Positions 3,275-64,000 of a DNA stretch of 64,000 bases are shown here, piece by piece. The stretch is taken from NCBI GenBank assembly GCA_965153285.1, contig OZ229111.1. One strand, written 5' to 3'. The notes beneath the pieces were generated by a model. The model had not been told where the DNA came from. It worked only from the letters and a program-made list of their open reading frames with translations, and made no database searches. The position numbers were made by a program, and so were the translations under genes. The number at the start of each line of letters is the position of its first letter. The first letter of the stretch is position 1. This stretch comes from Podarcis tiliguerta. Taxonomy: Eukaryota.

Positions 3275-3461
3275 GTTCAGAGCTCAGTGTTAGAGCATCT
3301 GCTTTGCACACAGGAGGCCCAGGGTTCAATACCCTGCATCTCCAGATAGAAATGGGAAAGCTTCCCTGCCTGAAACCTTGGAGAGTCACTGCCAGGAAGT
3401 GTAGACAATTATAAGTTAGGTAGGTCAGTGGTTAGACTTGGTCAAAGGCATTTTCCTATTC
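3275..3461 (+). mobile_element. tRNA-derived SINE, Squam3-like
   Basis: tRNA-like head with A box (agctcagtgttagagc) and B box (ggttcaatacc). Body continues cctgcctgaaaccttggagagtcactgccag...gtgtagacaa and ends aaggcattttcctat. Confidence 0.75.
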
Positions 3462-21243: not shown

Positions 21244-21907
21244 ATGACGACTTCACTGATCTTGCATCCACGCTGGGCGGATACCTTCATGTACGTGTAT
21301 GAGGAGAACCCGAATGAAAATAACCAGAATAAAATCCCAGCAATGGAAGGGCTAAGTGGGAACTGCCCAGCTACCCACTGCAGGGATTTAATCAGTCACC
21401 CGGTATTGGGTCGTCATTCCAGCACCATTGGGACTCACCAGGGTTCTGTCTACACGGATATACCTGCTCCAGATGCCGCCAGGCAGTGCCCCGCGCCACC
21501 AGCCTCCTCCAACGCCACCTTGGGCTATGGCTATCCTTTTGGAGGCAGCTACTACGGATGCCGATTGTCCCATTCCCACAACGTGAACTTACAACAGAAG
21601 CCTTGTTCGTACCACCCAGCTGAAAAATACCCCGAGCCCAGCGGCTCCCTCCCCAGCGAAGAACTATCCTCAAGGGCCAAAGAGTTTGCTTTTTACCCGA
21701 GCTTTGCCAGCTCCTACCAGGCGGTTCCTGGTTATTTGGACGTATCAGTGGTTCCAGGTATCAGTGGCCACCCAGAACCAAGACACGACGCGCTGCTTCC
21801 CATGGAAGGATACCAACACTGGGCTCTTTCTAATGGTTGGGACGGGCAGGTCTATTGCTCGAAGGAGCAATCACAGTCTACCCATCTCTGGAAATCACCT
21901 TTCCCAG
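21244..21907 (+). CDS. HOXC13: Homeobox C13, coding exon 1
   Basis: MTTSLILHPRW...YGYPFGGSYYGCRLSH..NVNLQQKPC...SRAKEFAFYPSF...WKSPFP. Phase-1 donor CCAG|gtaggg. Confidence 0.97.
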
Positions 21908-36769: not shown

Positions 36770-37003
36770 CGTTGTTTTATTTTATAAAATGTTTTATGAT
36801 TTTTTTAAAAAGCATATAAAAAACCGAAAGGCAGAACTTAGTGTTTTGTTTTGTCTCAAATTGCTAAAGGTGGGTGGCACCCTTTCTCCAACGCAAGTTG
36901 GCGCCCACGTGACCCCTGCGGACCAATAGGGTGGACCTTTAGGTTTAACTATGTTTAATGTCAGATAGCAATAAACTAGAAGCTCTTGGTCAGGCCCGCG
37001 GAA
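36770..37003 (+). promoter_or_regulatory. HOXC12 proximal promoter
   Basis: Cluster of TTTAT Cdx/posterior-Hox sites (36776-36800), E-box CACGTGAC (36906), CCAAT (36923) and GCAATAAA (36968). Confidence 0.6.
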
Positions 37004-37568
37004 ATGGGCGAACATAATCTCCTTAATCCTGGGTTTGTGGGACCGTTGGTGAACATCCATACGGGAGACACCTTCTATTTCCCCAATTTCCGAGCCTCCG
37101 GAGGACAGCTGCCCGGCTTGCCGTCTCTCTCCTACCCAAGAAGGGACAATGTCTGTTCTCTGCCCTGGGCATCCTCAGAACCCTGCAACGGATACCCCCA
37201 GCCCTATCTCAGCAGCCCCGTGTCTATTAACCCTTCCTTCAGCCGAGCCTGCGACCTAGCTAGAGTGGAAGAGAGCAAGTGCTACTATAGGGAGGCGTGC
37301 TCCGAGAACGCTCCCCTCAAAAGGGAGGAGAGGGTTAGGGACAATGCCTTGATGCCTCTCGAATCGGGGATCCCCAATGGAATGAGCGGCAGTTTCGGCA
37401 AATTTGACTATCCGGCTCCCGAGGCGGTGCCCCACGATCCCCCCTCTTGTCAGTCTTTGGAGTCAGACTCCAGCTCCTCCTTACTCAATGAAGGCAATAA
37501 GGGCGCCACCAGCGAGCCGTCCACAATGGTTTCCCCTATCAACCAAGGAAGCAATCTTTCCGCTGGGG
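37004..37568 (+). CDS. HOXC12: Homeobox C12, coding exon 1
   Basis: [33 protein letters not shown]...[23 protein letters not shown]. Phase-1 donor GGG G|gtaag. Confidence 0.97.
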
Positions 37569-38771
37569 GTAAGAACGTGCGACCAGGAAATATATATATA
37601 TATACGAATAAGAAAAGCGAATTTATGCAATGCCTTTTCTTTATTTTATTCTTATTTTGTGTTCTCTCTCTCTCTCTCCCTCTCTCTTTCTCTCTCTTAC
37701 GCGCGCGCGCGCTCTCTCTTGCTTGAAAAAGTCTGCTCGCGACTCTTGCTGTTATAAATTCCATGAAATTAGCAGCTGGGACTGAAGCATGTCTATTTGT
37801 GCCGAGGCCACTAGGGGTAGCACTCAAATGCCTCGTGCTTTATTAGGTGCTGCTTCTTTTAAAAGAAAAGCCTATAAACATGTAAATATCCCATAAAAGA
37901 GATCGCGATGGCCCAGATAGACAGATTTTCATGCCTCTCTTTCTTTCTCTCTCTCCCCCCACCCTCCTCCCGAATCTGAACAGGCACGCTACATGCAGGA
38001 CAATTTGCCACTGGGTGCGTGAAGCTTTTGCAACAGAAATGAAATGTAGAAGGGTGTGTGATTGTATTTGGAAGATTTGGTAGAAGTCTGACTACAGGGC
38101 TGGGAGGGCTAAACTTCCACGGGTTTTCTGTCCCCGGTGAGATTAGCCACCCTGGGTAAAAACCCATTCTAAGGATGGTGCCAAGCGCTGCATTAAAAAA
38201 AAGAAACAAACCCCCTGGTTTTCAAAACCCAATTCTCGCCTTCCCGCCATCCCAGCCCATCCCCATACAAAACCGGGAAGGTTCTATAAAGAAAAAGTAT
38301 ATATCTCCACGCAGTGCTGAGACACCATTTGCCAAAATACAAAAAAACAAAAACAAACCCAACCCAAACAAACTCTCTCTCATAAAGCTTCCCGTTATGT
38401 GCCTGATCCTCTGGTGAGCAAACACTTCCAGGAACAAGAACCAGTTGGTTCTCGTCTCCTGTGAAGCGTCCCTGGCTGCTGGAGATGTTTCATTCCCTCT
38501 GCAGAATCTGTCTTTGGGACTCTGAAGACAGAGGCTTCCTCGTCCTTAAACTTCAGATCTGACATCTCCCAAACTGGATACCTAAGGCATGCCAACCCAT
38601 CTGGTGCCTTGAGGTCTTACACGGTAACCGCAGAGACACTCTAGCATTCATTCTAGCTGATGGTGCTGGTACTTTTTGGCTGTTCGGGATCTGTAAGAGC
38701 TAGCTTAGGTTGCTTATTTTTCTGTAAGATAAATAAGCCAAAGTTGCCACCGGTTATAAAAGTCCAGCGGT

Positions 38772-38821
<50 letters not shown>

Positions 38822-39183
38822 ATCCTAACCAGCTTTTATCTCCGATCTCTCCTTAAATCCTAATAGTTCCGAAAACCTGCAATGTATGACTTATGTGGTA
38901 TGCGTGGTGACACAGGAGCCCAGGAGCTTGGAATCTAAAACGCAGATGTACAGGTCTTCTTCCCACCTTTCTCTCGAAGTTAAAGCATCTTTACTGGATT
39001 GCGCATTAGAAACGTGTATCTCATATTATTAAATAACGAGCCGTGTGTGGGTCAAAAAGGGAGGGGGGAAGCTTTCCCTTTTTTAAAGCGTTACCCGCTC
39101 CCCTCTTTCTTTTCGTTTCTTTCTTTCTCTTTCTCTCTTCCCCTCCATGTGTTTAAATCTCCTTTCCATCACGCTGTTCTTAG

Positions 39184-39422
39184 GTGCTCCCTGGTACCCG
39201 ATGCACACAAGGTCCCGGAAAAAGCGAAAACCCTATTCTAAGCTACAGCTAGCGGAGCTGGAAGGGGAGTTTATGGTCAATGAATTCATTACTCGCCAAA
39301 GAAGGAGGGAGCTTTCAGATCGGTTAAACCTGAGTGACCAGCAGGTGAAGATCTGGTTCCAGAACCGGCGTATGAAAAAGAAAAGACTCCTCCTGAGAGA
39401 GCAAGCCCTTTCCTTCTTTTAA
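39184..39422 (+). CDS. HOXC12: Homeobox C12, coding exon 2 (homeodomain)
   Basis: Acceptor ttcttag|GT, then [27 protein letters not shown]...[22 protein letters not shown]. Total CDS 804 nt = 267 aa. Confidence 0.98.
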
Positions 39423-42400
39423 AGTTCAGACAAGTCCGCTATCGGGTAAAAAAACCCCACAGAGACTCTCCGGCCTTCTTCATCACAACTGGTGGTACCG
39501 GGACTCTTACCTGATCTGGTTTGAATAGCCAGTTTAGATTATTATTATTTTTTCCTTTAAGACAAAACAAACCAACGAAAGTCAGTATCCTTAAAAAAGA
39601 TAAAGAAAGCCAGCCAACAGCAGGCGTGTCTACGTTATAAGTGTGTGATTGAGAGAGTATGAGGGGTTGGGATGCTTCTCTTCCACTTCTGGACCTGTTA
39701 GGGAAGAACCAAATGTGAATATGCAGAAAGGAAACCCCCCCCCCCCCTTCATCAATCAGCGTGGCTTTTCTAATGTATGGTTCACCAAGATTTGTCAGTC
39801 AGTCTCGTTGAGTATGTTCTGAATGTGAGTCTTGAGCCCGACACTCTCGCTCTTGTTACGCGTGTGCGAGCATTCACAGGTAGGGTTTCCCCTCTAAGCA
39901 ACAGGGTTCCCTGTTTTGTGTGGGGCAGAGTGAGGGAGGGTCTCCATTGCCTTGGCCTTGGCTTTGTTTGGTCGGTAACCCGGTCCTCAGCAAGAGAGCA
40001 TTCCAGGAAGCAAAGTCACTGTCCTATATATATCTCGGTTTAGTGTGTTGGGATTTTTCATTCTCTGGAGTAAAAGCTTAAGTGGATGTGGCATTCACCT
40101 TAAATCAACCGTAACCATTCTGATGGAGAATGGCGAGCCAGTGTTTTATGTTTGCCAGGGTTTATTTTCAGGGCACACTGGGCGGAAAAAAGTTCAGTAC
40201 CTAGATAGATGTTTGCAGCGTATCTATCTCGATAATAATAGGGGTGTCCAATATGTGGAACTTCGAGGTTCAGCTGGCTGTCCCCCGTGCTTGGCGGGTG
40301 GGAAATATATGGGTGCTTTTCTCGGATGCTCTTCTGGGGGAAAGACGAGCTGAGGATGGAATTTTGTAGACATCCACTCCCAAGGCTTTTCCAATGGCAG
40401 GCGGTGCCCACACGCGCGCTTCTGAGGATGCCCACTGTACCTAGACCCAGTGTACCTAGTGGGAATACTTTCAAGTAAACAACGCCTATGATTGGGCTGC
40501 AAAACACCAAAAAAAGCGGGGGGGGGGAGAAACCCACCTCGAGTTAATCCAATACCCCATAAAGTGAGGAATGATTTGTCATGTTAGGGTATTATAAAAA
40601 TGCAACCTTTTCAGAGGCTACAGCTGCAACCCTATACTCCTTGGCATGCTGGGGTTTAGCAGGGGAGCTTACTTCAGAGTAGACCTGTGTAGAATTGCGC
40701 GGTACCTCTCGCGTTCCTAGCCCAGCCGCGCCGCCTGCGTGGGTCTCCTCTGTCCACAACCCCATAAGCGGGACAGAACGCCTAACAATAATTTCAAATT
40801 GTGTTTTGATAATAGCTCCACTGAAGGAGACTTCGTGCCGCTTATTATGCGACTGTGTTTATTGATGATCAAGATGGTGGCGAGGGGCGGTGGGGAGATG
40901 CCCCCTTTTATACATTAACTATAGTGGCAGCCCCTTGGAGCTAATTAAGCTATTAATAGCTTCCCTCCTTCTAAGATAGAGAGTTCTCTTCTGGCATTAA
41001 AAACGTTTTCTTTAATGGTGGCTATTTTCGAAATGAATGAGATGTTTCTCCTCTACCTCCACCACCCCTCCCCTCTTTTAATCTTCCTCATATTTAGTTA
41101 GATTTTTATTTTTAATCACGGCAGTTCTCCTTTAAGAATCAAGAATTCTATCTCTCTCTCCCGTGCGTGTGTGTGCGTGTGGCTGTCTGTGTGTGTGTTC
41201 TCTCTCACACACACATGCACACACACTTATTTTCATTCCTGATTTTTCATAGGCAGCAGCTGATGACTCTGAACATTTATGGGGTGTGTCGCCTTATTCC
41301 CCCCCCCCCCCCACTACAGCCACACAAACGCACGCATTCTGCTTTGGGGGATATACGGTAATTTCTGCCCAACGCATCCATTCATCCTTCTAACTCCCAC
41401 CCCCACCGCCGGTTCCCCTTTGTACTTTCCCCGGTGTAGAACAGTCCCAAAGCAGGCAAGGGGAAGCGCAGAGCGGGTTGCCTTGTCGGTCTCAGCTCTT
41501 GCCTCAGACAACCATGAGATTTCCTAATAGCTCTGCCAGGTTTGGGCATTGCTTAAACTCCCATTCCTTAAATTCCCACTCAATGCGGGGAGGAAGGCGC
41601 GAGGGGAGGCGGGAGACAAGGGTTGCTGCAACCGTGAAAGTAACCCGACAGGAATCTCTCTCCCTCTCAGCCCGTTAAATGATTGATTTGGGGAATAAGT
41701 TCCCTTGATATTCCTGGTACTTATTCCATCGGGGTCCAGGAACCTATTCTCGTTCTGTTCTGCTGGTTTCCTAATTGCATACTTAAAAAAAAAAAAAAAT
41801 GTCTCGGGCCGCGGGGGGGGGGGGGCGGCCGGGAACTGGACGAAGTGACAAATGAGCCACAACAGCAAAGTGGGGTGAGGGGGGGTCAAGACGGTCTAAG
41901 CGGCGAGTTTTGCTACGACAGGCTTTGCTTCATTCGTTTTTATATCGGAGGGGATTAATTTTATGACAAAGGCAACGTTTTCCTGGGCCAGACTCAATTG
42001 TCACCACGTGGCTCCCCGTCCCGGCGTTCATGGTCATGGCCGGTGGCAGGAATGCCTCGCCTTTACGAGCTGCAAAGGATGCCGTCTAGTCCTTAAAATG
42101 CCTCTGTGTGTCCCCCGCCCCGCTCATTCTCCGCCCTTGCAAGCCTTATATTTAGGTCTGCTTCCCATGGCTGTGTCATCGTTCCTTGTCTTTATTCCGC
42201 TTTCCCCTGCCCCCCTCCCAATATCCAGAGTTTTGAGAGGTCCCCCATCCCAGTATCACCCTTTGGGTATATCACCCCCTCCCCTTTACAAACTCTAACC
42301 TTTGTAAAAGTAGAGGCATCCTCTGCCTGTGAGTGGCTTTGAATCCAATAGGTACCCAGTCACAATTATGTGCAATAGATTGGGGGGGGGGGGCGCGTGT

Positions 42401-45799: not shown

Positions 45800-48728
45800 T
45801 AGCAGGCGCTAGACAAGCTACTAACTTGGCAACCTCACCCTGCTCACCTTTAATAACACTGACCTACCGTACAAGGTTGTTGTAGGGATCGAAGCGCTCT
45901 GAACACTCAGAGCTAGCAGCAGCAGCAATACCGTCTCTATGCACCCTTTACTAGGGAGTAACCTGCATTCAACTAAGTGGGGCTTGCTTCTGTGTAAGGA
46001 CGCAGAGGACCTTGGTGTATCTCCGTAGGACTTTCTTTCAAGTGCATCTGTTTAGGGGTGCCCATCTCACTGAATCACTCCCCACCGTGCTTTCAAGAGA
46101 TGTCATTCACCGCCATTAAAATCAATTGGAGACTTGCCCTTGGCTTCAAAAGGATATAGATTTCACTCACAAGGTTTCTCTCTTCTTTTTTCACTCTCAT
46201 TTCTTCGAAAGAAGTACCCACACAAATATCATTTCTGCCTCTTTTACTGGAGGTGTGCACGGAACGTTGGTTGTCATATGAAGACTGTTAAGGGCTCCAC
46301 AGAAGTGAATAGGGTTCTGGATCATCTCCAACAAGCCTGGATTGTATATAGAGGCATAAATTGTGTAGAAAATTGTGGATCGGTTCACCTTGAAGAGGGA
46401 ATGCTTGGTTCCAAAGACGCTTAAACACTCACCCAAATAGATAAAACTTATTTATTACCAGTGAGTGGCTAGGACAAATTGTTGCTCGCAGTAAAAGTGC
46501 GTATTGTTCCTCAGCTTGCTTGCTGCTGCTGCTTCTGCTTCTGCTTTTTTTATATAGGGGTGTATTTCATAGCTATGGCTTTAAAATGAATTCATTAAGA
46601 AGCGGAAAGTATAACCCCATCTCCTGAATTGCAAAGAATAATTCTGCCTTCAAGAGAATAAGGGGGGGAAACCCCAACAACAGGCACACACCCAGTTAAG
46701 TTGTATTTCAGCAGTGCAAATTATTCCAAAATAATGGGAAATATGCAAAAGCGCATAGGCTTGATCCAAAAACAAGTAATACTTTATCCTTATCCTTATT
46801 ATTATTATTTTACTATAGGTGTTCTCTATACCGAAAGGGTTGTGAGCAAATGTTTTATGTGTTATCGGGGGGAAATAGAGAATTTATCCTCTGGGGCTGA
46901 ACATATGCACATAATAGTCATTGTTCAGTGCAGAAAGATGGTGCAAAGCGTAATTATATATTATAGATCTGAAGCGATGCTTACTAGTCCCAAGAAAACC
47001 CCAGCGATGTGTTTTGCTTGCTCGCCAGTATCAGGTAAGCTCCACACGCATCACCACCACAACGACCATCCAACATTCAGGACGGGTTTAACACGATGTC
47101 CTTTTCCTTCTTATTACACCACCAACAGCAGCAGCATATCGCATTATACATAGTTATTCCAATGGAACTTGTTCCCAAGTAAGAAGGCAGATTTTATGAT
47201 CCGGATAACAATGCTAACAAGTATTTGACACATTTCCTTCAAGTTACCAAGTAGGGAAATGTTAGCATGGATTTTTTATTTTTTTAAAAAAAGTGCAAGC
47301 CAGTGATTAAAAAAATATTTTATTTTAAATTATTAAAACGCCATTGTCTCGTGCTAATGTGCAAATGTGGAATACTGGTTGGCCTGCCTCCGCTTTCTGT
47401 CTGTCCATCTTATCCATCTGTCTGTCTCTCTCTAATCCCTGTATCTATCTTATATTTCGGTAAGCTTAGCCTCTGCAGTGACTGCCACATATCTACTTAC
47501 TGAGAATTCATAATCGGTGCTATTTTGAAGCATATATAAGACAATTGAAATACTGTTTCTCGCGGTTTCCCGGACGCACGGGATGTCTTCCCTCTTGACA
47601 AATGGTCCCTCGCTTGGGGGTCAGCAAGCCTTGGTCTTGGACTTCACGCAGGATCTGCGGCAAAGCTATCTGTCTGTCTCTTCCCTTGCCTTGGCTTTCA
47701 TCCCGTCAACGGCTGCAGCCAAAAATGTTTTGCAAACATTCCCATGCTCTTCTGGTATTTTGGAAAGACCCCGCAGGCTGAAGAGAAAGCAAAAAAGATA
47801 ACATAACAAATCTCGCCGTGAAGGGCATTAAAAAAATGAAATTCCATTATATAGGGTCATTCGCTCGTGTATGACACTAGGCGCCATTTGCCACGTACAA
47901 ACTGTGTCTATTTTCGAAAAAGGATAGGCTTTGTTACGAATGCGTCTTCTTTCGGGACACCGAAGAGCAAAGGGCGATCAGAAGATTGGGGCCAGGCGTG
48001 TTCCGGAGGAAATATTATAGCCCTCATTATTAATCTCTCCAACCTTTTTAAACGGAAAGCTTAAAAATGAATATTCACATAACATTATGTAAATATTAAT
48101 ATAGCACCCTATATTAATGGCACCCTAGGTACGCTATCATATAGGTGCAATGTGGGAGTAGTAGAGTTAGTTACACAAACGGGTGCGATCTACTCAAAAT
48201 TAAAAGCTCTTTGAGTTAATCAGGTGTTTAACTCTGATTACACTACCGTAATCAACAGGACTTTAAAGTGGTTACCTTTTCTTGGATTCTTCATCATGAT
48301 AATGATAGATCCTATCCAGTCAGAGTTAAACACACTTTAAGTCCCATTGTTTTCCATTTGAGAGGGCTAACACATCAGAAGAGCTTAAAACCACATCAGA
48401 GAGGGCTCTTAGATGTTGCTAAATGAAAGCAACATCTACTTTCCCCTCATTTCTGATTTTATTTCTATACTAGTCCTCAGCCACACCAGAAGAGATATCC
48501 CTGGAGGGGTAAATAAATATCTTAACAGTACTGATGTGGGCTTACCTCTCTTTAGCAAATGCAAACACAGAGGATCAAATCCTTGCCATTGGGATTAAGG
48601 AAGTGTTTCAGCCCAGGAGGTGTAACCATCAACTAGCTCCCCTGGCAAGTGGTCTGCCCTGCTCACTTGTTTGGAAGTGAGATTGCAATTGAAGCTATGT
48701 GCCAGTGCATTTACTCAGGGATTAGGGC

Positions 48729-48981
48729 CAGGGGTCAGCAACCTTTTTCAGCCATGGGCCGGTCCACCGTCCCTCAGACCATGTGGGGGAGGGCAGACTA
48801 TATTTTGGAAAAAAATAATGAACAAATTCCTATGCCCCACAAATAACCCATAGATGCATTTTAAATAAAAGGACACATTCTACTCATGTAAAAACACACG
48901 GATTCCTGGACCGTCCGCAAGCCAGATTGAGAAGGGGTTTGGGCCGCATCTAGCCCCTGGGCCTTAGGTTGCCTACCCCTG
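48729..48981. mobile_element. Non-autonomous hAT (Charlie-like) DNA transposon, 253 bp
   Basis: TIRs CAGGGGTCAGCAACCT and AGGTTGCCTACCCCTG (14/16 match). Degenerate 8-bp TSD gattagg(g)c / aattaggc with central TA. Confidence 0.85.
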
Positions 48982-49175
48982 AATTAGGCAAACAGAGGTC
49001 CCTGAAATTCCCTAGAAGCCATGGCCCAAAAACAGTCTTTTCTGAATACACCTGGAGCACTGTAGACATTGTGCAGGGCTAGCCTATGCTTGGGCCTTCT
49101 GTTGTCATCCCAGTGTATAATTCTGGTCCTCATTCTCTTCTTCCTCACCCCGAGGCTGCAGTCCTATATACACCA

Positions 49176-49288
49176 TGAATAGTCTACTGTGGTGTCCTGC
49201 AGATGTTGGACTCCAACTCCCATCATCCCTGACCACTGGACATGCTGCCTTGGGCTGATAGGCTTTGGCAGTCCACCACACCTGGAGG
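49176..49288. mobile_element. Short palindromic hAT-like MITE
   Basis: Arms gtggtgtcctgcagatgt-tggact and agtcca-ccacacctggagggcaccac around the caactcccatcatccctgacca core, a common squamate repeat. Confidence 0.75.
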
Positions 49289-49737
49289 GCACCACGTTGC
49301 CTAACCTCAACGAGGCTCACTTCTGAGTAGGTGTGTATTGGAATGCGCTGTGAGTGAGTCCAATATTTTATTCTCAAAGTGGAAACCTGCTAAACAAAAT
49401 CTCGGCTGCTACATTATCATCTTACACTGTCCCTAGCGACATTGCACTCTTTTAAGTAACATGTGCCATTATCATCAATATGCCAGCGCACCTTTTACTG
49501 AGTATTTTCTCCCCCTTTTATATGGGTGGGTTCATAAATACACAATCAAGACAGAGTGGGAATAATTAGCAATGTTTACCAACATATGCCACCCACGCCA
49601 CCTTTGAATCCATCTTACACCACGGGATTGGGAAATGAAATAGAATACGAGTAATTAGTTTTAAAGCAAATCATTTCAAATGGAAACTTATAGGTAAAGC
49701 CTAATGAACTGCAGAGGGGGTAAAAAAATAAACCCTG

Positions 49738-49914
49738 ATTTTTATATGACTTGGTTGGTAGCAAGGAGACACAGCAATATTTTACTGTTGAGAGAATAAA
49801 TTAATTAATATGTCTGTAGCAACCAACTGCAGTGGCTTCATGGCTGACTGCATTTAAACGAGATATATGTATCAAGCCTCGCTGGTGTTGTTAACAAGAG
49901 TGATAATAAAGATG
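49738..49914 (-). ncRNA. HOTAIR: Block homologous to the conserved core of the HOTAIR last exon
   Basis: Minus strand CATCTTTATtATcActCTTGTTAACAAcACCAGcGAG (31/37 identical to the recalled human sequence). About 70 nt later comes TAATTAATTtATTC..ACaGTAAAATATtGCtGtGTC, with the same spacing as in human. Position and strand are syntenic. Transcription is not shown. Confidence 0.65.
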
Positions 49915-52881
49915 AAAAGGATAGGAAAGATACAAAGATGGATACATTTGTATTCCTTGCAGGAGCCATAAGAGTTTGCTTAGAATTTCTTAGAGCCAGC
50001 CTTTGTTTCTGTGAGGTTATGTTAACCAGCAGAGTTGATGAATCAATTAAAGAAAACCACTCACTTACCAACAAACAAACAACAACATGAGGTTATGTCT
50101 ACGTGTATCTATTATTATTATTCCCAATAACCTTAATTTGAAAGGAAATGTGCACACAGTCTAGCTCGAGTTAAGGGCTATGGAGTTCTATAGATTTCAG
50201 AGAGATGTGCTCCCTCATCCTACCCCTATTTATCTATTCCCAAGTAAATGTGACTGCCTATAACTGCAACCTCAAAGCAGGTGTTTAAATCTCTCCCACT
50301 TGAAAGCGATAAATTTTGCAGCCGGATCCTATCCAGTTTTACTCAGAAGCAAGTTGACGCTTAACTTGGACTGAGTCGTTTTCCTATATTTGGAAACTAG
50401 GGCTTTCCCATAATTAAGAGTGAAGGTGGCTTTAAAAACTCTCCTTTTATGGCATGCCCAAAAGTTAGAAATCTCATTTGCCTTTCTGGAACCCAAATAA
50501 GACCACATTTGCATTTAAGAATGTTTGTTTATGGGTTGGCTGGGTCTGAAACAGACGGACTAAAAATACTTTCCCCCTTTAATAAAGTGATGTGATGAAG
50601 GCCTTGTGGTAGTTGATTGTTGTTATGCAAGCAGCCTGGGCTATATCTGAAGATCTTTTAAGAATCACAGCCAACATTAATCTTCCCAAGGGGGGGGGGG
50701 AAGCATCTTTGTAGTTGTATCCAAGACCCTCCCTTTACCTTCTCCAAACCCGTGTTCGCTGGAGATGAGATGATAATTAAAGGGCATGTGAAAATTCATC
50801 TCATTGTGATGAAGAACTATTAATCTATTATGAGGCTGTGTGAGGTTTTGAGAAAGAAAGAATCATTAGTATTATTAGTATTATTATTATATGAAATAGG
50901 GTGGAGTAGGAGGCAGTCCTAATAACAGCCAGCGCCTTCCAGACTCACCATCAAAATCTGCGAGAGCTCTGCCATTTACTGCAGTTGAGGAGTGAGTTCC
51001 ACCGAATTGTCCTTTAAAGGTTGCACAATCAGCAAAGTCCTGCTGCCGACACCCCTTGTGTCCCTCGAGAATTCCTGACTGAGTGGGGGCAAAATATTTG
51101 CACATTCTGCATGCATTTGCGTGGTAGTGCAACTTTTGGGGGCAGTGAGGGGCCATACAAAGCAGCCATAGGAATAAAGGAATAAATATTCAAAGGAACA
51201 AATCCTGGATGTAAATGACAAAGGAAAACGCATGTACTCCGTCTCAGAGGTACACGTAGGGCCACCAAACGAAGGGCTTTAAACACCCACAAAACACACC
51301 TCCCAGTAGCTGCTGCTAAAATCAAAGGGAGCCGGCAGCTTTGAAATGAAGGCGACGATTAGCCCGCCAAGACCGGGCAATAGGTGGTTGTGCTTGGCGA
51401 CAGAGACTTGAACACGTTCACCCTTTTTCATGCTTATGATGAGTCTTATTAGAATGTTGTGTTTATCCACGCGCGCGCACACACACAAATAAACATACAA
51501 ACAAGCAAACAAACATGCTCCGCTTGCTATGCCAGTTATCTGCGTCAGAATGTAGAGATACAGTATCAGCCTAACAATACCTATAGTTTACTGCCTCCTC
51601 TGTATTCCTGAAAGCGCAGGATCCAGTCAAAGTGAAGCGCTTGTAAGTCCCCTTGTTGTCGATTAAGCACGTGCTTAATTCTTCCTCGTTGAAATTAATT
51701 GGTCTTTGGTCGTGCCTTTCCTAGTTACTCATCTATATAAACGACTGGCGGCGTTGCATCAGTGAAGTATGCGGCGCTGATTTTAAAAGTTCTGAGTTTG
51801 TGAAAGATGCAATAACTTGGTAGCCATTATTACTCGGTTGGTTTAAAAGGGGAATAAAATGACTTAAATGGAGACGATCGCCTAATACGTGCAGTGGATC
51901 GGGATCCATGACCCGTCTATCGATAGCGCTCCATTATGTCTAGGTAACTGACAAGGAAAAGGATATGCTATATAAATTATATTATATGATCAGCTACAGT
52001 CTCGATTCCGCCCCCCCCCCCAACAGCCGCCACCACCATCATACAAGCCTGAACTCCCCGCACTGACAACCACGGACCTAGCGTTTTCCTGGGCCCAAAC
52101 CCAGCATTTCGAAAAGCAAAACTAAACCTGTTTTCTGCACTCTGACAAACTTTTTGCCACTGTTGTGATTTGGCTGCTGCGGAAATGGCGAGTCAGGAGA
52201 CTCTCCTTAAAAAGGAAAGCAGGGAGGCTACACGCGCTTTCTTTTTACACTTTCCATTTCAGATTGACGTAAACAAAACATTCTATAGATTTAAATAAAA
52301 GCAGAGGCGATTTTCTGAATGGCCTCCTGCATTAAAATTAGAGTGAATTCGTAAATCGTCCGTCCTCGTCGTCGTCATAATGAAGAATTGCTGTTTTTTT
52401 TTTAAGAATATGGACAGATAAATTCATTAAGAGAAGCGCCGGCCACCCCCCCACCCAGTCACCCAGCCACCCTCTACCTCAAGGCCACATTCAACCGCAA
52501 CAGCTCCGGACGCTGTAATCTATACGAAGCCCGGCGTTGAAGGACCCCCTCTTAACAACCCTTTAATACAGCAAACTAAAGATCTGGGGAGACCTTTGTT
52601 GATCTCCAATGATGAGGCCCGCCCCCCCTTCTTCTTCCTCCTCCTCCTCCTCCTCCACCCCCCACCCCCACTCCGTCCCCTACTGTAGTTCAGAGAATAT
52701 TGTACCTCGTTTGCCGCAGCTTAAAAACCAGCAAATGTGTTAGCAATTCTGCGAGACCTTGTCTGCCCGGTGCTAATCTTTTTTTTTTTTTTTTTTTTGG
52801 TCGGATGACTTCTGTTTACAACAGTCTGTCTGGGTGGGCGGGGGCCGCCATTACAAAGTGAAGGTCAAGTTAGCATCCTAC

Positions 52882-52968
52882 CTTATATGGTATACGGCGG
52901 TCCTCCATTTTCATGGATTTGTCACAACAGAGCTAACTGGCCATCGCATTTCTTACCCAAGTAAACAT
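52882..52968 (-). ncRNA. HOTAIR: Block homologous to HOTAIR exon 4, with intact splice donor
   Basis: Minus strand ATGTTTAC..AGAAATGCgAtGGCC...AAATGGAGGACCGcCG..CC.TATAAG|GTAGG, versus recalled human ATGTTTACAAGACCAGAAATGCCACGGCC...GAAATGGAGGACCGGCGCCTTCCTTATAAG| exon end. Confidence 0.65.
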
Positions 52969-55424
52969 ATGGGTCTCTGTCTCTCTTTTTAAACACCCCC
53001 CCGGCCCATTTCCCCCTCTCTTTTACATCACCATTCTTATTTTGAGGGAGGGGGGGGCTATCTGAATGCAACGATCAAGAGGAAGGCTGTGGGGGTGCGT
53101 GGAGGGTGAGACTATGTGGGAATGAGACCAGAAGTCCGCATGACGACCGCTGCTTGGAAAGTTTTTTTTCCCCTCCCTCTCTCTCCTCCCCCCCCCCTCC
53201 GGGATTGCAGACTTCAAACAACTCCTCTTTCAGCAAGATGCAAACACGTCTGCGATGGAGGAAATTAAACGTCATAAAGAAAAGCCCAATTAGGGTTTAA
53301 TGTCTCAACATTACGGTTTCCTCCAGAAAACAATGAAGTTCGCTCGGTAAGGAGAGGGGGGGAATGGGTGGGGGGAGGGGATAAGGGAAAGGAGGGTTTA
53401 GATTTTCTTGTCTTAATCGTATAATCTTTAAATAAAGGAGGAGGTGGGAGGGATGGGGTGGGTAGATCAGAGCGTCTGAAATTAATAAGAGCGGAAATGA
53501 GGGGAGATCCTGCAATGTCTTGAGCAGCCTGTCTACTGTGGAAGGCTGGATTATAGACATTCTCATATCACAGGTTGTCCGTCGGAGGTCCCAGAACGGG
53601 CCTAATTGCGCACAGGAGATCTGCCAGGGATTCGGAGGTTAAAGAGGGGAGTGGGTGGGTGGTCTTTACATAGATTGAACCGATAAGGTGATATCGCGAC
53701 AAGGAAAAAGGGCTGGATGGAGGAGAGGGGAAGGGAAGGGAAGGGAAGGGAAAGGGAGGAAATTTAAAGACAGAGAGAGAGGCGAAAGTGGGTGGCTAGT
53801 GGGTGAATAAAGAGGATTTATTTATTTATTTCCCACCCACCCACCCACCCCCAAAAGAAAGCGCCCCTCCCTCTCAGTGGCAAAGCTGTTCACGTTATGG
53901 TAAAAGATAAGTCTTCCTCTCGAAGGAAACATATGAAAAATGGCTGGAGTCCTTGTTTTGGCTGAGACGGAGGAGAAGAGCAGGTTCGCTTCTTTACCAC
54001 CGCAAGATGGTGGAGGGGAGCATGAGAATTAAATCTCGATCGAGGTCAACCCATAATTTTAGGCTATCCAAGTAGCTCCCCCCCCCCCGCACCGCTTCCC
54101 ATTTTCTTCTCGTATTGGCAGCGACGTGGGAGTGCGGTGGGGACGGTGGGGGTAAGGGAGGGAAAGCTGCAAACCAAACAAAAAAAACCCCACGCCCTTG
54201 CAAGAGAGTAGATTTCCAAGGGACTCAATGGGACTTTGTTCCCAAATAATATCATAGCAAGATCATAACCGCAACGCCGGGGCCGCTATAAATTTCGCCT
54301 GGGTCTATGGCCCTCCTCCATAGTGGTAGCGGATACAGTTGTTACTTAGCGGAGGCGGCAGTGCCGCAACGCCTCTGAACAAAAAAAAAAGCCCAAACCC
54401 AATCATTTATATTGTCTTGACACCCGGCGTTCGTGCGTGCTGTTTAGCAAGGATATTGTTGTGGGATGGGCGAGGAATATAACAACAATCGTTCTCCTAG
54501 TCCATTAGAGAAAATGAACAGATTTCCCAGTGACAGTTTCCAAAGCCGCTTAATCTATACAGGGTGCGCGCGCGCGCTTGTGTGGCTCTTCCCAGACTAA
54601 TGCCAGATGTGCGTTTGCAGCGCTATCTGCAGTTCTTCCCCGTTTTGAACTTCCAGTCCTGTTTATTTGTTTGTTTTGGGATTTCTGCGTGGCGCAGAAG
54701 GCACGGGAGAGCTTTCTTTTGATTCGTTTGCCCTGCATGGCGGAGGGAACTGGTAAGCAGGACTCCAACTCAAAAAAGACGGCCTCTGTTTGTATTTTTT
54801 TTTAAAAATCAACACGGAATATACTTGTCCTTTCCTTTCAGTCCCACATTATCAATTAGCGTTGCTTTATTTTTGTTTTAAACAGTAGCCTACTTGCAAC
54901 GTTACCTACGATGCGAGTCACTACGAGGAGACATCCTTATGTGCACATCCTTGAAGTCAACGGGAACTCCGAGTTTAAAATATTTAGTATCGCGCTGCTA
55001 GCATTTAAAGGTATTTTAAGAACAAAGCCAAACAAATCTGCATCCTTTTCCAACGTGCAGTGGACGCACAATTTCGGATTTGGTCTCCCTACAGCCACCC
55101 CTCTCGCTTACTGAAATGGACAATGCGACCATGTGAGTTCCTAAACTCCTTACTGTAAAAAAAAAATATATCCTTTTATATGCAGGCACAGAATAGCAGA
55201 TTTGAAGAAGTCCCAAAGGGAGTATGTCTGATAAAGAAAGCAGAATGATGGAATGTGCGCGTGAGGGAGAGAATATAAGCATCAAACAGCACTTCAGACA
55301 GCTGGTTCTGAATCCTAGTAGGATGAAGGCAATAACTAAAGCGATATAAAGTTACTAAGAAAACAGATATTTTAAATTTCTGTTTCGTAAGTCACTCTGT
55401 ATGTATATATGTATAAAGAGAGAG

Positions 55425-55554
55425 NNNNNNNNNNNNNNNNNNNNNNNNNNNNNNNNNNNNNNNNNNNNNNNNNNNNNNNNNNNNNNNNNNNNNNNNNNNN
55501 NNNNNNNNNNNNNNNNNNNNNNNNNNNNNNNNNNNNNNNNNNNNNNNNNNNNNN
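55425..55554. other. Assembly gap (N run)
   Basis: Run of n characters within a (GA)n tract. Confidence 0.99.
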
Positions 55555-56137
55555 AGAGGGGGACAGCCGTAATACAAGTAAATGGTCAAGGGCACGATCC
55601 AGCCAAAGACGGTCACTTTTAAATTAATTTCAGGGTGTGTGTGTGAATAAAGTATGTCCCTCAGTGACATTGGTGGGATTTAACTGTGGCCGGATCGTGA
55701 CCACAATAACTATCCGACTTCATAAGTGGAATGGCATACAGAGAAATACAGCATTTGGGTTTTGTTCCGAGTAATTTTTTTAAACTAAGTACCTCATTTT
55801 AGAAATATAATTTGAGATTTCAAGAAGGGTTTCCAAGCGAATGCACAAGACTGAAAGTTAAATGCATTTTTGCACACTCTGGATCTTGACTGGATCATTT
55901 AGATCTTGTACTCCACTGAAAATAACTCATCTACCGCTAATTTCTAGAAACCATGAGACATAATAATTCACCAGATTTCAAAACAAAACAAAACAAAACG
56001 AAAAGCACATATAGAGTCATGCGTTTGTAGTTGCATTTCATGCGAATTTCCAACAATTGATGTCTGTAGATGCGCTTGTGGGCTATCAAGTTACTTTCAA
56101 CTGTTCTCATATGCATATATTGAGGGACACATAGATT

Positions 56138-56186
<49 letters not shown>

Positions 56187-59100
56187 CCTTGCGCACGCGC
56201 ACACGTCCCCATGCAAACAAAGAGGCTGATATTTCATAGCATTGCCAAAAGGCGCTCTGAAGTAATGAACATTCCTTATTGCTGGTTTCTATGTTTGCAG
56301 AATGTCACCACACAACTATCCCAGGCATTCTGTTTCATTTTATTCTGATAAATGTGGATACTGGGGTTGATTCCAGCACTACTGACTTACATCGGGGAGC
56401 GGGAGGATAAGCTATTGAAGTTTCTTTCCCCCCTGTAAAAACGTTGAGATTTCACTTTGATCACGGTGTGTCTGATGGGAACAAGGCAGCCTGCTGGCTG
56501 AAATGAAAGAAACCTAGGTATCAAGGTAGACTAAAAAGCTAAAAAACATCCAGCTCATACACACAACCAAAAGCAGAACGTTTCATATAAGTTAAACCCC
56601 TTTTGGCAAAATCTCACTCACAGTGGCTGCTATGTCTTCCTTCACACATACTAATAAGAAGCTATCCCGTTACAATAAAGCTTATATCGTGCATACGGAG
56701 ATATTTGCTAATAAAACTGAACTCTCACGTGAAACAAAAATTCCTTGGATGGGACTTGATGGTCCACATCCCGAAAACCTCATCCAGATAATAAAGCATT
56801 TTTTAAAAAATCTATGCATGTCTATTCACTCTCTGCGTGTTGTAGAATTTTATTATTTAAAACGTTGGGTGCTTTTAAAACGTTTGTGTATTATGTTGGT
56901 CAATGGCCCACTTTCTTTTGAACACAATCCAGTGCAGCTATTCTTTTTGAAAGGAACCTGAAACACACCGAAAATTGGCTTCTTGGGTGAATTACTAGGT
57001 CCGCTTTCATTTGGAAAGCGGAATAAGCCATTGGCAAACTCCAATGAACTTGGCTTTGTAGCGTATATATTCAAGTGTGTCTGGACCGGAAGGGTCGGCC
57101 AAATATGTTGGCGTAAGAGTTCCTTTTATTCGCTTCTAGCTTGCTAACTAGTGGAACTGACCTAACGATCCTTACATGTATATTGATATGGCTGCAACCC
57201 AATGCACGTTTTTCTTGGGAGTAAAGCCAAGCAACCCTCTGTAGACAATGGGCTTCAATCGAACTTGCTTGTGTGCATAGGATCAGACCCTACTGAGCAA
57301 TCACTGCACTTTATTATTCATTGCAATATGCCAAGTATCATTTGCAATCCTCCCAATTATGATGGTTTATATTACCCCAATAATGCGCAGAGTAGAATTC
57401 TGCGTGGGGCATCTAGTCAGGGCATCCCTCAGCGCAGCTACACTGCTCACTGTTGACTTTGCGTGTGGCTGGGAAGCATACCGCTTATCAGCTTTTATCT
57501 TTATTGGGTCCACATGATTTTGAACTTGCAACCCTGGCCTGTGGAAGATCTGAAACATTCTCCCCCTCCCCGCTTCCCCGCTTTGAATCGTTAGCAGCTT
57601 ATGAAGTCGTCTTTAGTAGGCTGGCTTATATCCAATTAAATTTATCTTTGCCATTGGGGGACAATAATATTTTCCAAGAGCTTCCTACTTGTAGCTATTG
57701 TCTCTGGCCCCGGATTTCCTGAACACACAAGCAGTCGAGGATAATCTGCTTGCTGGCGAAGGTTTGTAGTACCCTTTGGCTTGATTTAAATACATCGGGG
57801 TATTTTATTTTTCCTTGGGAAGTAATTGCATCGCTGTTGCACGGGGAAAAAAATCATTCCTAGGCTGTGATCCCAAACACATTGACTTGTAAGTCACTTG
57901 CATAGGATTCAGCGGGACTCAGTTGCTTCCAGTGCGCTGCATCGCGGAAGACTCACAGGTCACAATCCTAAAGCGTCAAAAGTTTGGGATTCTTTGGCCC
58001 ATAGAAGGCATGCGAAAACGGCTGCTTGAAATGTTTGGGTGGCTTCCCATCCCCAAACCTCACAAAAGTAACCCTTCACCCCCTGTATAGAGAACCTATC
58101 TTATTGTAGGCCGTAGAAATACCTTAGGGGCGTCCGCTTCATTCTGAAATTCGGGGGAAATCCGCCAAGAAAAGGCCAAAAGGCAAGAGGTAAACAACAT
58201 TTTCGTGACCCCATTTCTCCCTAGGAAAAGCTTTAGGGTTGGGTAGTACATGTGCCTATGACTGAGATGCTGGGAGATGGGAAAATAGAGATTTAGATTA
58301 GAATATCTACATTTATGCATATTCTAGAAGGTAGTCTTTGTGTCATAGTCTGCACATTTCTAAAAGAGAGACCCGTATGACGATCTCTGAATGAAAGCAT
58401 TAATCGGTGTGGACCATGAAGTTAATCGAAATTTGCACTGATTTACATATGTTAATTTATCTCCCAAACTGATAAGAGGACGATGAAACTAGTTTATATG
58501 AGATCCAAGGCGGGTTTCGACCACACCTACAAATCTTTGCCGTCCATAGACTAGCTGGCAAATGTTTGTTAGTTATTCCCAAACCCGCTTTGGCCATCGT
58601 GTACCGTTCAGTCTTGATTCGCTTAATATACACAAACAAACCCAGAGACCGGAGTCCTGACCACGATGGGAACATGTCTTTGGCCAAACCCGCCACAACT
58701 ATAATCCGAGCTGGGTTCTTTCAAAGTTCATTTTACCCACAGAAAAGTACGTTTCCTAGAAAGTCTTGTCCACGTGGATACAATTTTCTGCCTAAATAAT
58801 AATAATAACAATAACAAAATACTGGAATGTGTTTATAGTGTGATCTTGGTTCTGTCGGGCAAATGACCCGGCAACAGAAGAAGGGAATGTATTGCCTGAT
58901 TAACACAGCAATGCCATGTTGAAGTACACTTGGCGAGCCACAGACAACCAGCCGGGTGAACATATACATATGTCTAATTACACCTAGGAAGCTCTGCCTG
59001 GCAATTGACACAATCCTGTTCTCTCTGCCTGCTCTGCTCTTTCTTATGAATCTTCATAGTGAGTCACACCATCACACAACTTGGGGAGACACTGTCATAA

Positions 59101-62100: not shown

Positions 62101-62406
62101 AAATGTTTGAAAACTTACTGACGAATCTTTATCCAGTCCCCTGGGCTTCTAACAGTTGAATCCACATTTTTAAGAAAAGAAAAGAAAAAAGACAGAGAAG
62201 AGAAGAAGGAAAAGGGAAATAAAAGAATATGTCTGATCATGCCTAAAATGTGACTTGCATGGAAAGAACCCCCTAAAAAAAAAAGTAAGAGAGGGAAAAT
62301 TACAGTTAACACATCCTTTAGACCCTCCCTCGCCTCCTCCACCCCTGAGCTACCCCCACCCAACCCCATATCTGAATCCTCCTGAACAACTGAAAGCAAA
62401 ATCCAA

Positions 62407-62464
<58 letters not shown>

Positions 62465-62529
62465 TTCGCCAGCCATCCCCTCGCTATCTGCTTTGAATGC
62501 TTACAAGGGGTGTGCCTGGAAGAAAATGA

Positions 62530-62788: not shown

Positions 62789-63467
62789 ATGTTTAACTCA
62801 GTGAACCTAGGAAACTTCTGTTCCCAGTCGCGCAAAGAGCGGAGTGCTGACTTTGGAGAGCGAGCAGGTTGCGCTTCCAATCTCTACCTCCCCAGCTGCA
62901 CCTATTACGTCCCAGAATTTTCAACTGTGTCATCTTTCTTGCCACAGGCCCCCTCTCGCCAAATCTCCTACCCTTATTCCACTAACCTCTCTCAAGTGCA
63001 GCCAGTGCGAGAGGTCTCCTACGGGCTAGACCCCTCGAATAAATGGCACCATAGAAGCAATTACGCCTCGTGTTATTCCGCGGAAGATCTGATGCACAGG
63101 GATTGCCTCCCGCCTTCCACCATGACCGAAATGCTAATGAAAAACGAAAGCGTGTACAGCCACCACCACCACCCCAGCTCCAACCACCCGGCGTCCACTG
63201 GCTTCTACTCCAGCATGAACAAAAACAGTGTCCTCCCGCAAGGCTTCGACCGGTTCTTCGAAAACGCCTACTGCTCCACCGAGAACCCGCCCGAGACCTG
63301 TTTGCAGAAGACCGAGAGCAAGCTGGAGACCGACTCCCAGCCCACCGCGCTGTCATCCCGCGGCGACCAAGGCGTAGACCCGGAAGACGAGGAAGAAAAC
63401 ACCAACCCGGGCTCGTCAGCTTCATCCTCCTCTGTCAACAAGGAAGGGAGCAAAACCAGCAACTCGA
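62789..63467 (+). CDS. HOXC11: Homeobox C11, coding exon 1 (exon 2 lies beyond the window)
   Basis: [54 protein letters not shown]...[13 protein letters not shown]. Phase-1 donor TCGA|gtaggt. Confidence 0.96.
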
Positions 63468-64000
63468 GTAGGTAGAGAAAGCAGTAAATGGAAAGGTTAA
63501 GGGACTAGCCCGCTGTTTTGTCGGTCAAATTTTATGTGGAGTTTTATAAGCATTCAAAGGATTTTATTATAACCTACAAAGCTCTTTCTTGCAACGAGAA
63601 GAATTTTTACGATGGGAAAGGCTCTTTGAGAAAAATGGAGATGTTAGGCGCAGACACAGTATCTCAGAGTCTGTGAAATTTTAAAAGCACACCATGGTGA
63701 CAAATATTAACTTTGATCATGAACTTACATGAGCATTTTAAAAGGATTTGGTCCCGGGCTTCTGAGGGTAAAAGGCAATTGGGCAGAACACTGCTCTTGC
63801 TTCCTGTCCTCGCGAGGAGGCACTGAGAGATGCACGCGAGCGAGCGGGGGGGGGGGCGGGTGGTGTTATTTTTTCCCCTTATTGAAAATGCATGCAGAAA
63901 TTCAAATATATATCTATATTGCTATGAATGTGGGGAAAGGGAATGCAACGTTTTCACGTCCTCAGTGCATCCTGTGTTGTCGTTCTTGCTCCTGTTGTTG

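Follow-up and report, generated by a model that had tools for sequence, protein, structure and literature searches.

HOTAIR is the textbook example of a poorly conserved, mammal-only lncRNA, and the posterior HoxC cluster of a lizard raises the question of what, if anything, of this gene is present outside mammals. It also offers a clean test of an older question, namely whether the core of HOTAIR has been kept as DNA, with the role of an enhancer, or as RNA. Squamates are well suited to such a test, since this lineage shows tail regeneration, differing axial formulae and loss of limbs. According to He et al. (2011), HOTAIR exists in mammals only, and Quinn et al. (2016) found its splice-site motif in eutherians and metatherians only. 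Our search of the literature on HOTAIR together with lizard, Anolis or gecko returned no report of a squamate HOTAIR. We analyzed a window of 64,000 nt from Podarcis tiliguerta (GenBank assembly GCA_965153285.1, contig OZ229111.1), numbered from its first nucleotide. The gain is incremental because the deep age of one conserved noncoding element (CNE) of HOTAIR and its conserved flanks have already been published.

Both HOX genes flanking the interval were found from their open reading frames. HOXC12 exon 2 (39147–39422, plus strand), whose translation contains the homeodomain sequence, forms the 5' boundary, and HOXC11 exon 1 (62789–63475, plus strand; Pfam PF12045) forms the 3' boundary. The distance from the HOXC12 stop codon to the HOXC11 start codon is ~23.4 kb, compared with the ~17 kb quoted for human. 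Relatives were searched with HOXC11 exon 1 only, which is 94% identical to Hox-C11 of Gekko japonicus. Two published RNA-sense sequences, a HOTAIR-sense oligonucleotide and the tammar exons, place the HOTAIR sense on the minus strand of the window, antisense to the HOXC genes. The placement between HOXC12 and HOXC11, the antisense orientation and the squamate origin given in a preliminary description of this DNA are thus all confirmed. The same description proposed four colinear blocks resembling HOTAIR exons 3, 4, 5 and 6, and the four strings that it quoted are all present on the minus strand where it had located them. Order and strand hold, as do block 2 (exon 4) and block 4 (the core of the last exon), but blocks 1 and 3 lack support, and the description of four exon blocks was therefore overstated.

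Homology of the two retained blocks was assessed by scanning the interval against 4227 Rfam families. Three of the six best matches were to HOTAIR_1, HOTAIR_2 and HOTAIR_3 (RF01904–RF01906), all on one strand and in the order of the models. Their scores are below the Rfam gathering thresholds (22.9 against 44 bits for HOTAIR_1, 47.5 against 60 for HOTAIR_2 and 33 against 80 for HOTAIR_3), and a scan of Rfam at these thresholds yielded no HOTAIR match. The matches define two modules 2957 nt apart: module A, which consists of the exon-4-like block and the adjacent CNE, and module B, which is the exon-6 core. Judging from the sequence comparisons, both modules, CNE included, are almost certainly homologous to the core of the HOTAIR locus.

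The exon-6 core (49778–49925, minus strand) is homologous, over 148 nt, to the conserved domain in the last exon of HOTAIR. In the 23-kb scan of 4227 families, HOTAIR_2 matched positions 49860–49925 with 47.5 bits and an E-value of 1.4e-8 (51/69 identical). The HOTAIR_1 match at 49778–49815 (22.9 bits, 29/37 identical) has an E-value of 2.1 taken alone and 0.44 in another scan, and it lies 44 nt from the HOTAIR_2 match in the correct order. Compared by eye with the printed 149-nt core of tammar 'Exon6', the lizard sequence is colinear from end to end over 148 nt, with both ends highly conserved and a weaker middle. The resemblance of block 4 to exon 6 is thus upheld over 49925–49778, while the last 40 nt of the block as originally drawn (49777–49738) are unsupported. 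The core contains the palindrome TAATTAAT together with GTTAAC and TTTATTA, and these AT-rich conserved letters presumably correspond to homeodomain-type sites, judging from known consensus motifs.

The exon-4-like block (52882–52985, minus strand) matched HOTAIR_3 at 52883–52985 over the full model (positions 1–98) with 33 bits and an E-value of 8.8e-4 in the same 23-kb, 4227-family scan, and 64 of the 98 consensus positions are identical. A comparison by eye with the published tammar 'Exon4' revealed the same 14-mer, TGAAAATGGAGGAC, and the same ending, TATAAG. Block 2 had been assigned to exon 4 correctly except for its 5' limit, since the true start at 52985 is 17 nt further 5'. The 3' end of the block reads ...CCATATAAG and is directly followed by GT. 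This GT opens a candidate 5' splice donor, AAG|GTAGGA, which matches the consensus MAG|GTRAGT at seven of nine positions and is located at the nucleotide homologous to the exon-4 donor. We found no good polypyrimidine acceptor upstream of the block. CpG-rich domains are present on the flanks of module A.

The CNE lies at 52841–52873 on the minus strand, exactly 8 nt past the GT, the intervening stretch being GTAGGATG (52874–52881, minus strand). It is 31/32 identical to the published human CNE of 32 nt, with one inserted G. Likewise, 39 of the 40 positions of the HOTAIR-sense oligonucleotide are identical in the lizard (window positions 52875–52835), with the same 1-nt G insertion. The element carries the A state of non-mammalian vertebrates and, read on the plus strand, contains TGAAGGTCAAG. 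It has the sole AAGGTCA of positions 39500–62700, a motif that we take to be a nuclear-receptor half-site from its consensus. The CNE is the strongest element of the locus and was absent from the preliminary description.

The lizard element agrees with the HOTAIR CNE of Nepal et al. (2020, PMC7139118) in its location between HoxC11 and HoxC12, in its A state and in its offset, which in human is also 8 nt from the splice site of exon 4; it differs by the one additional G, in the GC-rich 3' end. These authors dated the CNE to the gnathostome ancestor and described a paralogue between HoxD11 and HoxD12. Their 37 species include alligator, painted turtle, frog, coelacanth, gar and elephant shark, and no squamate. 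In mammals, including human and mouse, the CNE is an enhancer: it is nucleosome-free, marked by H3K27ac and transcribed in both directions, and its activity parallels that of HOXC11. HOTAIR expression is correlated with HOXC11 in cis. The claim that the locus is ancestral to amniotes is sound, because the place, strand and order are correct and two of the blocks are true homologues; the CNE is even older than amniotes.

The two other proposed blocks were rejected as HOTAIR homologues, their resemblance being at chance level. Block 1 (53173–53218, minus strand), described as exon 3, is a low-complexity stretch with 76% purines, and 26 comparable purine-rich 25-mers exist in the interval. It aligns equally well to the unrelated lncRNA family Vax2os1_3 with an E-value of 0.34, which is at chance level. 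Human exons 1–3 have no homology in mouse (Schorderet and Duboule 2011, PMC3102750) or in tammar (Yu et al. 2012, PMC3541083), and an exon 3 in a lizard was therefore unlikely on prior grounds. Block 3 (51004–51025, minus strand), a weak resemblance of 22 nt to exon 5, gave no Rfam match, and by eye it has only GTGC..CAATT..ACTCA in common with the 50-nt tammar exon 5. Yu et al. (2012, PMC3541083) reported that exon 5 is very poorly conserved even among mammals. Whichever exons they model, HOTAIR_4 and HOTAIR_5 gave no match at E ≤ 10 over 39500–62700 or in scans of small regions, block 1 included. The Rfam scans of the interval detected no homologue of the promoter or of exons 1–3 and 5 of the human-type six-exon gene.

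The lizard modules are the same two parts that are common to all mammalian HOTAIRs. Mouse Hotair consists of 'exon 4' and 'exon 6' only (Schorderet and Duboule 2011, PMC3102750) and tammar HOTAIR of exons 4–6 only (Yu et al. 2012, PMC3541083). The lizard locus resembles both in its interval, its strand, an exon 4 that includes the donor, a short last-exon core (149 nt in tammar against 148 nt here) and the lack of detectable homology to human exons 1–3. In contrast, transcription was demonstrated in mouse and tammar by cDNA, RT-PCR and in situ hybridization, and identity is lower here (~65–74% to the Rfam consensus, under gathering scores). With human HOTAIR, a six-exon gene proposed to act as a PRC2/LSD1 scaffold, the lizard shares the locus, the orientation, exon 4 and the 'domain B' homology of exon 6; the promoter, exons 1–3 and 5, and the 5' PRC2-binding and 3' LSD1-binding regions are unsupported here. 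Both of these binding regions are poorly conserved even in mouse (Schorderet and Duboule 2011, PMC3102750). Taken at the level of DNA, these comparisons indicate that the squamate orthologue of an ancient HOTAIR core lies in this interval. In this squamate, exon 4 is retained together with its candidate donor, the CNE has kept its 8-nt offset and the length of the last-exon core is unaltered. The portion of HOTAIR that all mammals share therefore dates back at least to the divergence of the mammalian and reptilian lineages.

We then considered features that bear on an RNA product. The minus strand carries a strong consensus donor at 50948, pyrimidine-rich acceptors at 51947, 51315, 51204 and 50545, none of them tied to the homology, and an AATAAA ~400 nt 3' of the exon-6 core. 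Single-sequence folding of the exon-6 domain revealed no excess stability (z = +0.63 sense and +0.44 antisense), and neither module presented a thermodynamic structure signal (z = +0.63, +0.44 and −1.65; not significant). He et al. (2011) reported a conserved RNA secondary structure in this exon-6 domain. Coding potential was not detected: all open reading frames are shorter than 100 aa, and the eight minus-strand frames of 77–98 aa have no Pfam match. The splice-site, folding, poly(A) and CpG checks argue neither for nor against a spliced lncRNA in lizards.

Our preferred reading is that the modules have been kept mainly as cis-regulatory DNA of the posterior HoxC cluster, as enhancer-type sequences that would bind proteins. 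They would probably also lie inside a simple, mouse-like antisense transcription unit that spans the exon-4-like block, the last-exon core and the DNA between them, and transcription through this unit would act locally, without a conserved RNA fold. We give this account as a whole (homologous core, mainly cis-regulatory retention and antisense unit) a probability of about 0.5; the presence of some minus-strand transcript across the modules in posterior embryonic tissue is, considered separately, slightly favored over its absence. The cis-regulatory emphasis is supported by the unique AAGGTCA of the CNE, by the TAATTAAT palindrome and GTTAAC of the core, by the enhancer activity of the mammalian CNE, and by the lack of structure signal and coding potential along with the CpG-rich flanks of module A. 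The account as a whole is weakened by the sub-threshold Rfam scores, the poor acceptor before the exon-4-like block and the failure to detect promoter homology. Against the cis-regulatory emphasis in particular, the fact that the GT and the end of exon 4 are retained exactly could equally reflect a constraint on splicing, at the RNA level.

This last point leads to the strongest alternative, that the locus encodes a true spliced orthologue of the HOTAIR lncRNA, with its conserved parts retained because of a function at the RNA level. The exon-4 donor would then be spliced to a last exon containing the 148-nt core, or the RNA would bind proteins, or, as proposed by Nepal et al. (2020, PMC7139118), an intron-retained CNE would pair with a complementary HoxD11 noncoding transcript. 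Conservation is indeed exact to the nucleotide at the end of exon 4, at the GT and in the 8-nt offset, and mouse, tammar and human HOTAIR have precisely these two conserved blocks as their common exonic parts. Table S1 of Nepal et al. (2020, PMC7139118) lists host-transcript evidence in HoxC as 'Y' for coelacanth, and Quinn et al. (2016) reported ESTs in the HOXC12–HOXC11 interval in at least six species. The donor at 50948, the several acceptors and the AATAAA are compatible with such a transcript. However, neither module has a structure signal, homology to the promoter and exons 1–3 was not detected, the acceptor before the exon-4-like block is poor, and loss of mouse Hotair is reported to have little or no phenotype. 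Moreover, the GT forms part of an uninterrupted ultraconserved stretch reaching into the intronic CNE, and its retention is therefore not specific evidence for splicing. Overall, we consider this alternative rather unlikely. A related proposal is that the amniote ancestor already had a two-exon antisense RNA, in which the exon-4 donor is joined to a last exon bearing the ~150-nt core and the first intron contains the CNE, and that this RNA is still spliced and expressed in posterior tissues of squamates, with donor and core under RNA-level constraint. HOTAIR would then not be a mammalian invention; we regard this proposal as tentative and somewhat below an even chance.

Less probable still is a possibility already raised in the preliminary description, that the modules are purely enhancers or insulator-type elements of DNA, from which squamates make no stable antisense transcript and which mammals later recruited into HOTAIR exons. 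Active enhancers are usually transcribed anyway, and the absence of any transcript is a strong claim. This alternative also leaves unexplained why homology to exon 4 spans the mammalian exon over its entire ~100 nt as far as the GT, and why the two parts that are always exonic are the very ones conserved here. In its favor, the CNE, which has a paralogue between HoxD11 and HoxD12, was already present in the gnathostome ancestor, well ahead of any HOTAIR on record, and it acts as an enhancer in mammals. The letters of the core resemble AT-rich homeodomain sites, the CNE bears the presumed nuclear-receptor half-site and no RNA structure signal was detected. In addition, He et al. (2011) and Quinn et al. 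(2016) found the HOTAIR promoter and remaining exons in mammals only. Finally, chance resemblance without any homology to HOTAIR, which applies to blocks 1 and 3 alone, has a negligible probability as an explanation of the locus and is rejected for block 2, block 4 and the CNE, in view of E-values of 8.8e-4 and 1.4e-8 for syntenic matches that share one strand and follow the order of the models, the near-identity to the published 40-nt oligonucleotide and the agreement with the tammar exon-6 core along its whole length.

The region 49738-53218 occupies the central part of the 23.4 kb that separate the HOXC12 stop codon from the HOXC11 ATG. The genes of the window are all on the plus strand: HOXC13 exon 1 (21244-22209), HOXC12 exon 1 (36986-37726), HOXC12 exon 2 with the homeobox (39147-39422) and HOXC11 exon 1 (62789-63475). 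Using HOXC11 exon 1 alone as the query, we found 94% identity to Hox-C11 of Gekko japonicus, 90% to Paroedura picta, 88% to Sceloporus and 87% to python. The squamate origin proposed for this DNA therefore holds, with geckos as the nearest relatives. The HOXC12-HOXC11 interval contains no ORF of at least 100 aa, eight minus-strand ORFs of 77-98 aa had no Pfam match, and no Rfam family matched it at the gathering level.

When positions 39500-62700 were scanned by E-value on both strands against 4227 Rfam families, HOTAIR families represented three of the six best matches. HOTAIR_2 matched 49860-49925 (47.5 bits, E 1.4e-8, 51/69 identical to the consensus), HOTAIR_3 matched 52883-52985 (33 bits, E 8.8e-4, 64/98 identical) and HOTAIR_1 matched 49778-49815 (22.9 bits, E 2.1, 29/37 identical). 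Each match spans its full model, and the three share one strand and keep the order of the models. All of them score under the Rfam gathering scores and are therefore not family members by Rfam's rule. We consider the HOTAIR_2 and HOTAIR_3 matches statistically clear; the HOTAIR_1 match is weak when taken by itself (its E-value falls to 0.44 in a 4.9-kb scan) but lies only 44 nt from HOTAIR_2. Rfam places all three on the plus strand, at first sight against an antisense transcript.

Published RNA-sense sequences point to the opposite strand. Nepal et al. 2020 (PMC7139118) printed a 40-nt HOTAIR-sense RNA oligo around the 32-nt conserved noncoding element (CNE) of HOTAIR, together with their CNE query. 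Relative to this oligo, the minus strand at 52875-52835 has a single substitution and an extra G; the CNE itself (52873-52841, minus strand) is 31/32 identical apart from the insertion. The substitution, C to A, turns GTCATGG into GTAATGG and fits the A that these authors found in non-mammalian vertebrates at the CNE position changed in mammals. Likewise, Yu et al. 2012 (PMC3541083, Additional file 8) printed exons 4, 5 and 6 of tammar HOTAIR, which we compared by eye throughout. The tammar 'Exon6' (149 nt, CTTATCCTTTCCATCTTTAT...AGTAAAATA) is colinear over its whole length with minus strand 49925-49778 (148 nt, CCTATCCTTTTCATCTTTAT...AGTAAAATA): about 32 of the 37 initial positions match, the middle is looser and the tail TAATTAATT...AGTAAAATA is near-perfect. 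The length of this last-exon core thus differs by at most one base between marsupial and squamate, and HOTAIR_2 and HOTAIR_1 represent opposite ends of a single domain of about 150 nt. The tammar 'Exon4' matches 52985-52882, with an identical 14-mer (TGAAAATGGAGGAC) and the same TATAAG end. Because the minus strand matches both the oligo and the tammar exons, it is the HOTAIR sense strand, in agreement with the antisense orientation first proposed. The Rfam models HOTAIR_1-3 (RF01904, RF01905, RF01906) apparently represent the reverse complement of HOTAIR RNA, which would invert strand calls made from them.

On the minus strand, from 5' to 3', the locus consists of an exon-4-like block (52985-52882; HOTAIR_3 and tammar 'Exon4'), the spacer GTAGGATG with a candidate donor (52881-52874), the CNE and, 2957 nt past this donor, the last-exon core (49925-49778). 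The donor, AAG/GTAGGA, agrees with 7/9 positions of the donor consensus. The human CNE is 8 nt off the splice site and intronic in Ensembl models (Nepal et al. 2020, PMC7139118); the offset of the CNE from the GT junction here is exactly 8 nt. We estimate the probability that the exon-4-like block, the CNE and the core are homologous to HOTAIR at about 95%.

The preliminary description had listed four colinear minus-strand blocks resembling human HOTAIR exons 3 to 6, and all four strings are present where it placed them. The exon-4 block (52968-52882) is borne out by HOTAIR_3 (E 8.8e-4) and tammar 'Exon4', although its 5' end was drawn 17 nt short. For the exon-6 block (49914-49738), HOTAIR_2, HOTAIR_1 and tammar 'Exon6' support 49914-49778; its 5' end was 11 nt short and its last 40 nt find no support. 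The strongest element of the locus, the CNE, was absent from that list. The colinear series is thereby reduced to two blocks plus the CNE.

The remaining two blocks found no backing as exons. HOTAIR_4 and HOTAIR_5, whichever exons they model, gave no match at E<=10 in any of three Rfam scans, of which two covered short stretches under less strict filters. The presumed exon 3 (53218-53173) is 76% purine, in an interval where 23 or more purines occur in each of 26 non-overlapping 25-mers, and it aligns equally well to the unrelated family Vax2os1_3 (E 0.34). Homology to exon 3 was unlikely beforehand, since human exons 1-3 were not found by BLAST in the mouse interval (Schorderet & Duboule 2011) and exons 1-3 were not recovered by Infernal in tammar (Yu et al. 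2012, PMC3541083). The presumed exon 5 (51025-51004, 22 nt) has only GTGC..CAATT..ACTCA in common with tammar exon 5, which is itself very poorly conserved (Yu et al. 2012, PMC3541083). On sequence comparison, the exon homology of both blocks is unsupported, not disproved.

HOTAIR was described as confined to mammals by He et al. 2011, whose non-placental search covered platypus, chicken and zebrafish only and whose best-kept part was the 239-bp 'domain B' of exon 6. Mouse Hotair has two exons, related to human exons 4 and 6 respectively, the second exceeding 75% identity only over a subdomain of about 400 bp (Schorderet & Duboule 2011). Among 43 vertebrates searched, Quinn et al. 2016 found six microhomologies, all present in eutherians and one alone deeply conserved, and a splice-site motif that both eutherians and metatherians keep. 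The HoxC11-HoxC12 CNE was reported by Nepal et al. 2020 (PMC7139118) in alligator, turtle, frog, coelacanth, gar and elephant shark; they also described conserved flanking sequence, a HoxD paralogue and, for coelacanth, a host transcript ('Y'), and their 37 species included zero squamates. No report of a squamate HOTAIR was found in the literature searched. The window adds a squamate to the CNE-bearing lineages, and conservation outside mammals extends beyond the CNE to exon 4, its donor and the last-exon core in full. This is the same minimal set by which mouse and tammar HOTAIR are defined. The suggestion of an ancestral locus is thereby supported, its CNE part being already published as older than amniotes.

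In the reading we favor, these elements are conserved cis-regulatory DNA inside an antisense unit, probably transcribed and acting locally. The CNE carries TGAAGGTCAAG on the plus strand (52859-52869), which resembles an (extended) nuclear-receptor half-site and contains an AAGGTCA that occurs nowhere else in the 23-kb interval. In the core, the ends that are best conserved carry the TAATTAAT palindrome (49802-49809; one further site in the interval), GTTAAC (49890-49895) and TTTATTA, presumably homeodomain-type sites. We counted these motifs in favor of function at the DNA level. The mammalian CNE is an enhancer that is nucleosome-depleted, H3K27ac-marked and transcribed bidirectionally, and HOTAIR expression correlates positively with that of HOXC11. 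In the window as a whole, TGAAGGTCAAG recalls the DR0/TCAAGG sites noted earlier at 33734 and 31668-31810.

Alternatively, the lizard locus could produce a spliced, HOTAIR-like transcript constrained at the RNA level, which we consider less likely than not; the odds slightly favor a minus-strand transcript of some kind. The position of the candidate donor at the homologous nucleotide counts for an RNA. Neither the core (z +0.63 sense, +0.44 antisense) nor exon 4 with the CNE (z -1.65, 13/200 shuffles as good) folds better than shuffled sequences, which counts against a structured one. The sole minus-strand donor with 8/9 consensus in 48-58 kb is ATG/GTGAGT at 50948, around which a lineage-specific middle exon could lie. 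Pyrimidine-rich minus-strand acceptors occur at 53249, 53086, 51947, 51315, 51204 and 50545, and AATAAA at 49372 and 48463. Such a transcript would be predicted to begin around 53.0-53.3 kb or within the CpG-rich stretch at 54.0-55.25 kb, and to end at one of these AATAAA signals. The exon-4-like block and CNE are flanked by two domains, at 51.0-52.75 kb and at 54.0-55.25 kb, where the CpG observed/expected ratio reaches 0.7-1.0; at 48250-51000 the ratio is 0.2-0.45. The CpG-rich domains (51000-52750, 54000-55250) are possibly unmethylated DNA of promoter or Polycomb type, the upstream one being a candidate start region for the antisense transcript. The donor, acceptor, AATAAA and CpG signals all count on the side of an RNA, but each is permissive at most.

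The 50948 donor is 56 nt 3' of the presumed exon 5, with the 51204 and 51315 acceptors upstream. Runs of N occupy 1916-2047 (132 bases) and 55425-55554 (130 bases); the latter, 2.4 kb upstream of the exon-4-like block in the HOTAIR sense, could hide part of a promoter. Microsatellites of the (GT/CA)n and (CT/GA)n types at 41160-41232, 62393-62494 and 56126-56188 produced sub-threshold matches to mir-297, mir-466, mir-1003 and snoZ178, which we rejected as spurious. Finally, the tRNA model of Rfam (RF00005) matched 3281-3336 on the plus strand in part, over its positions 9-63 (36.1 bits); this is probably a piece of a SINE derived from a tRNA, not a tRNA gene.
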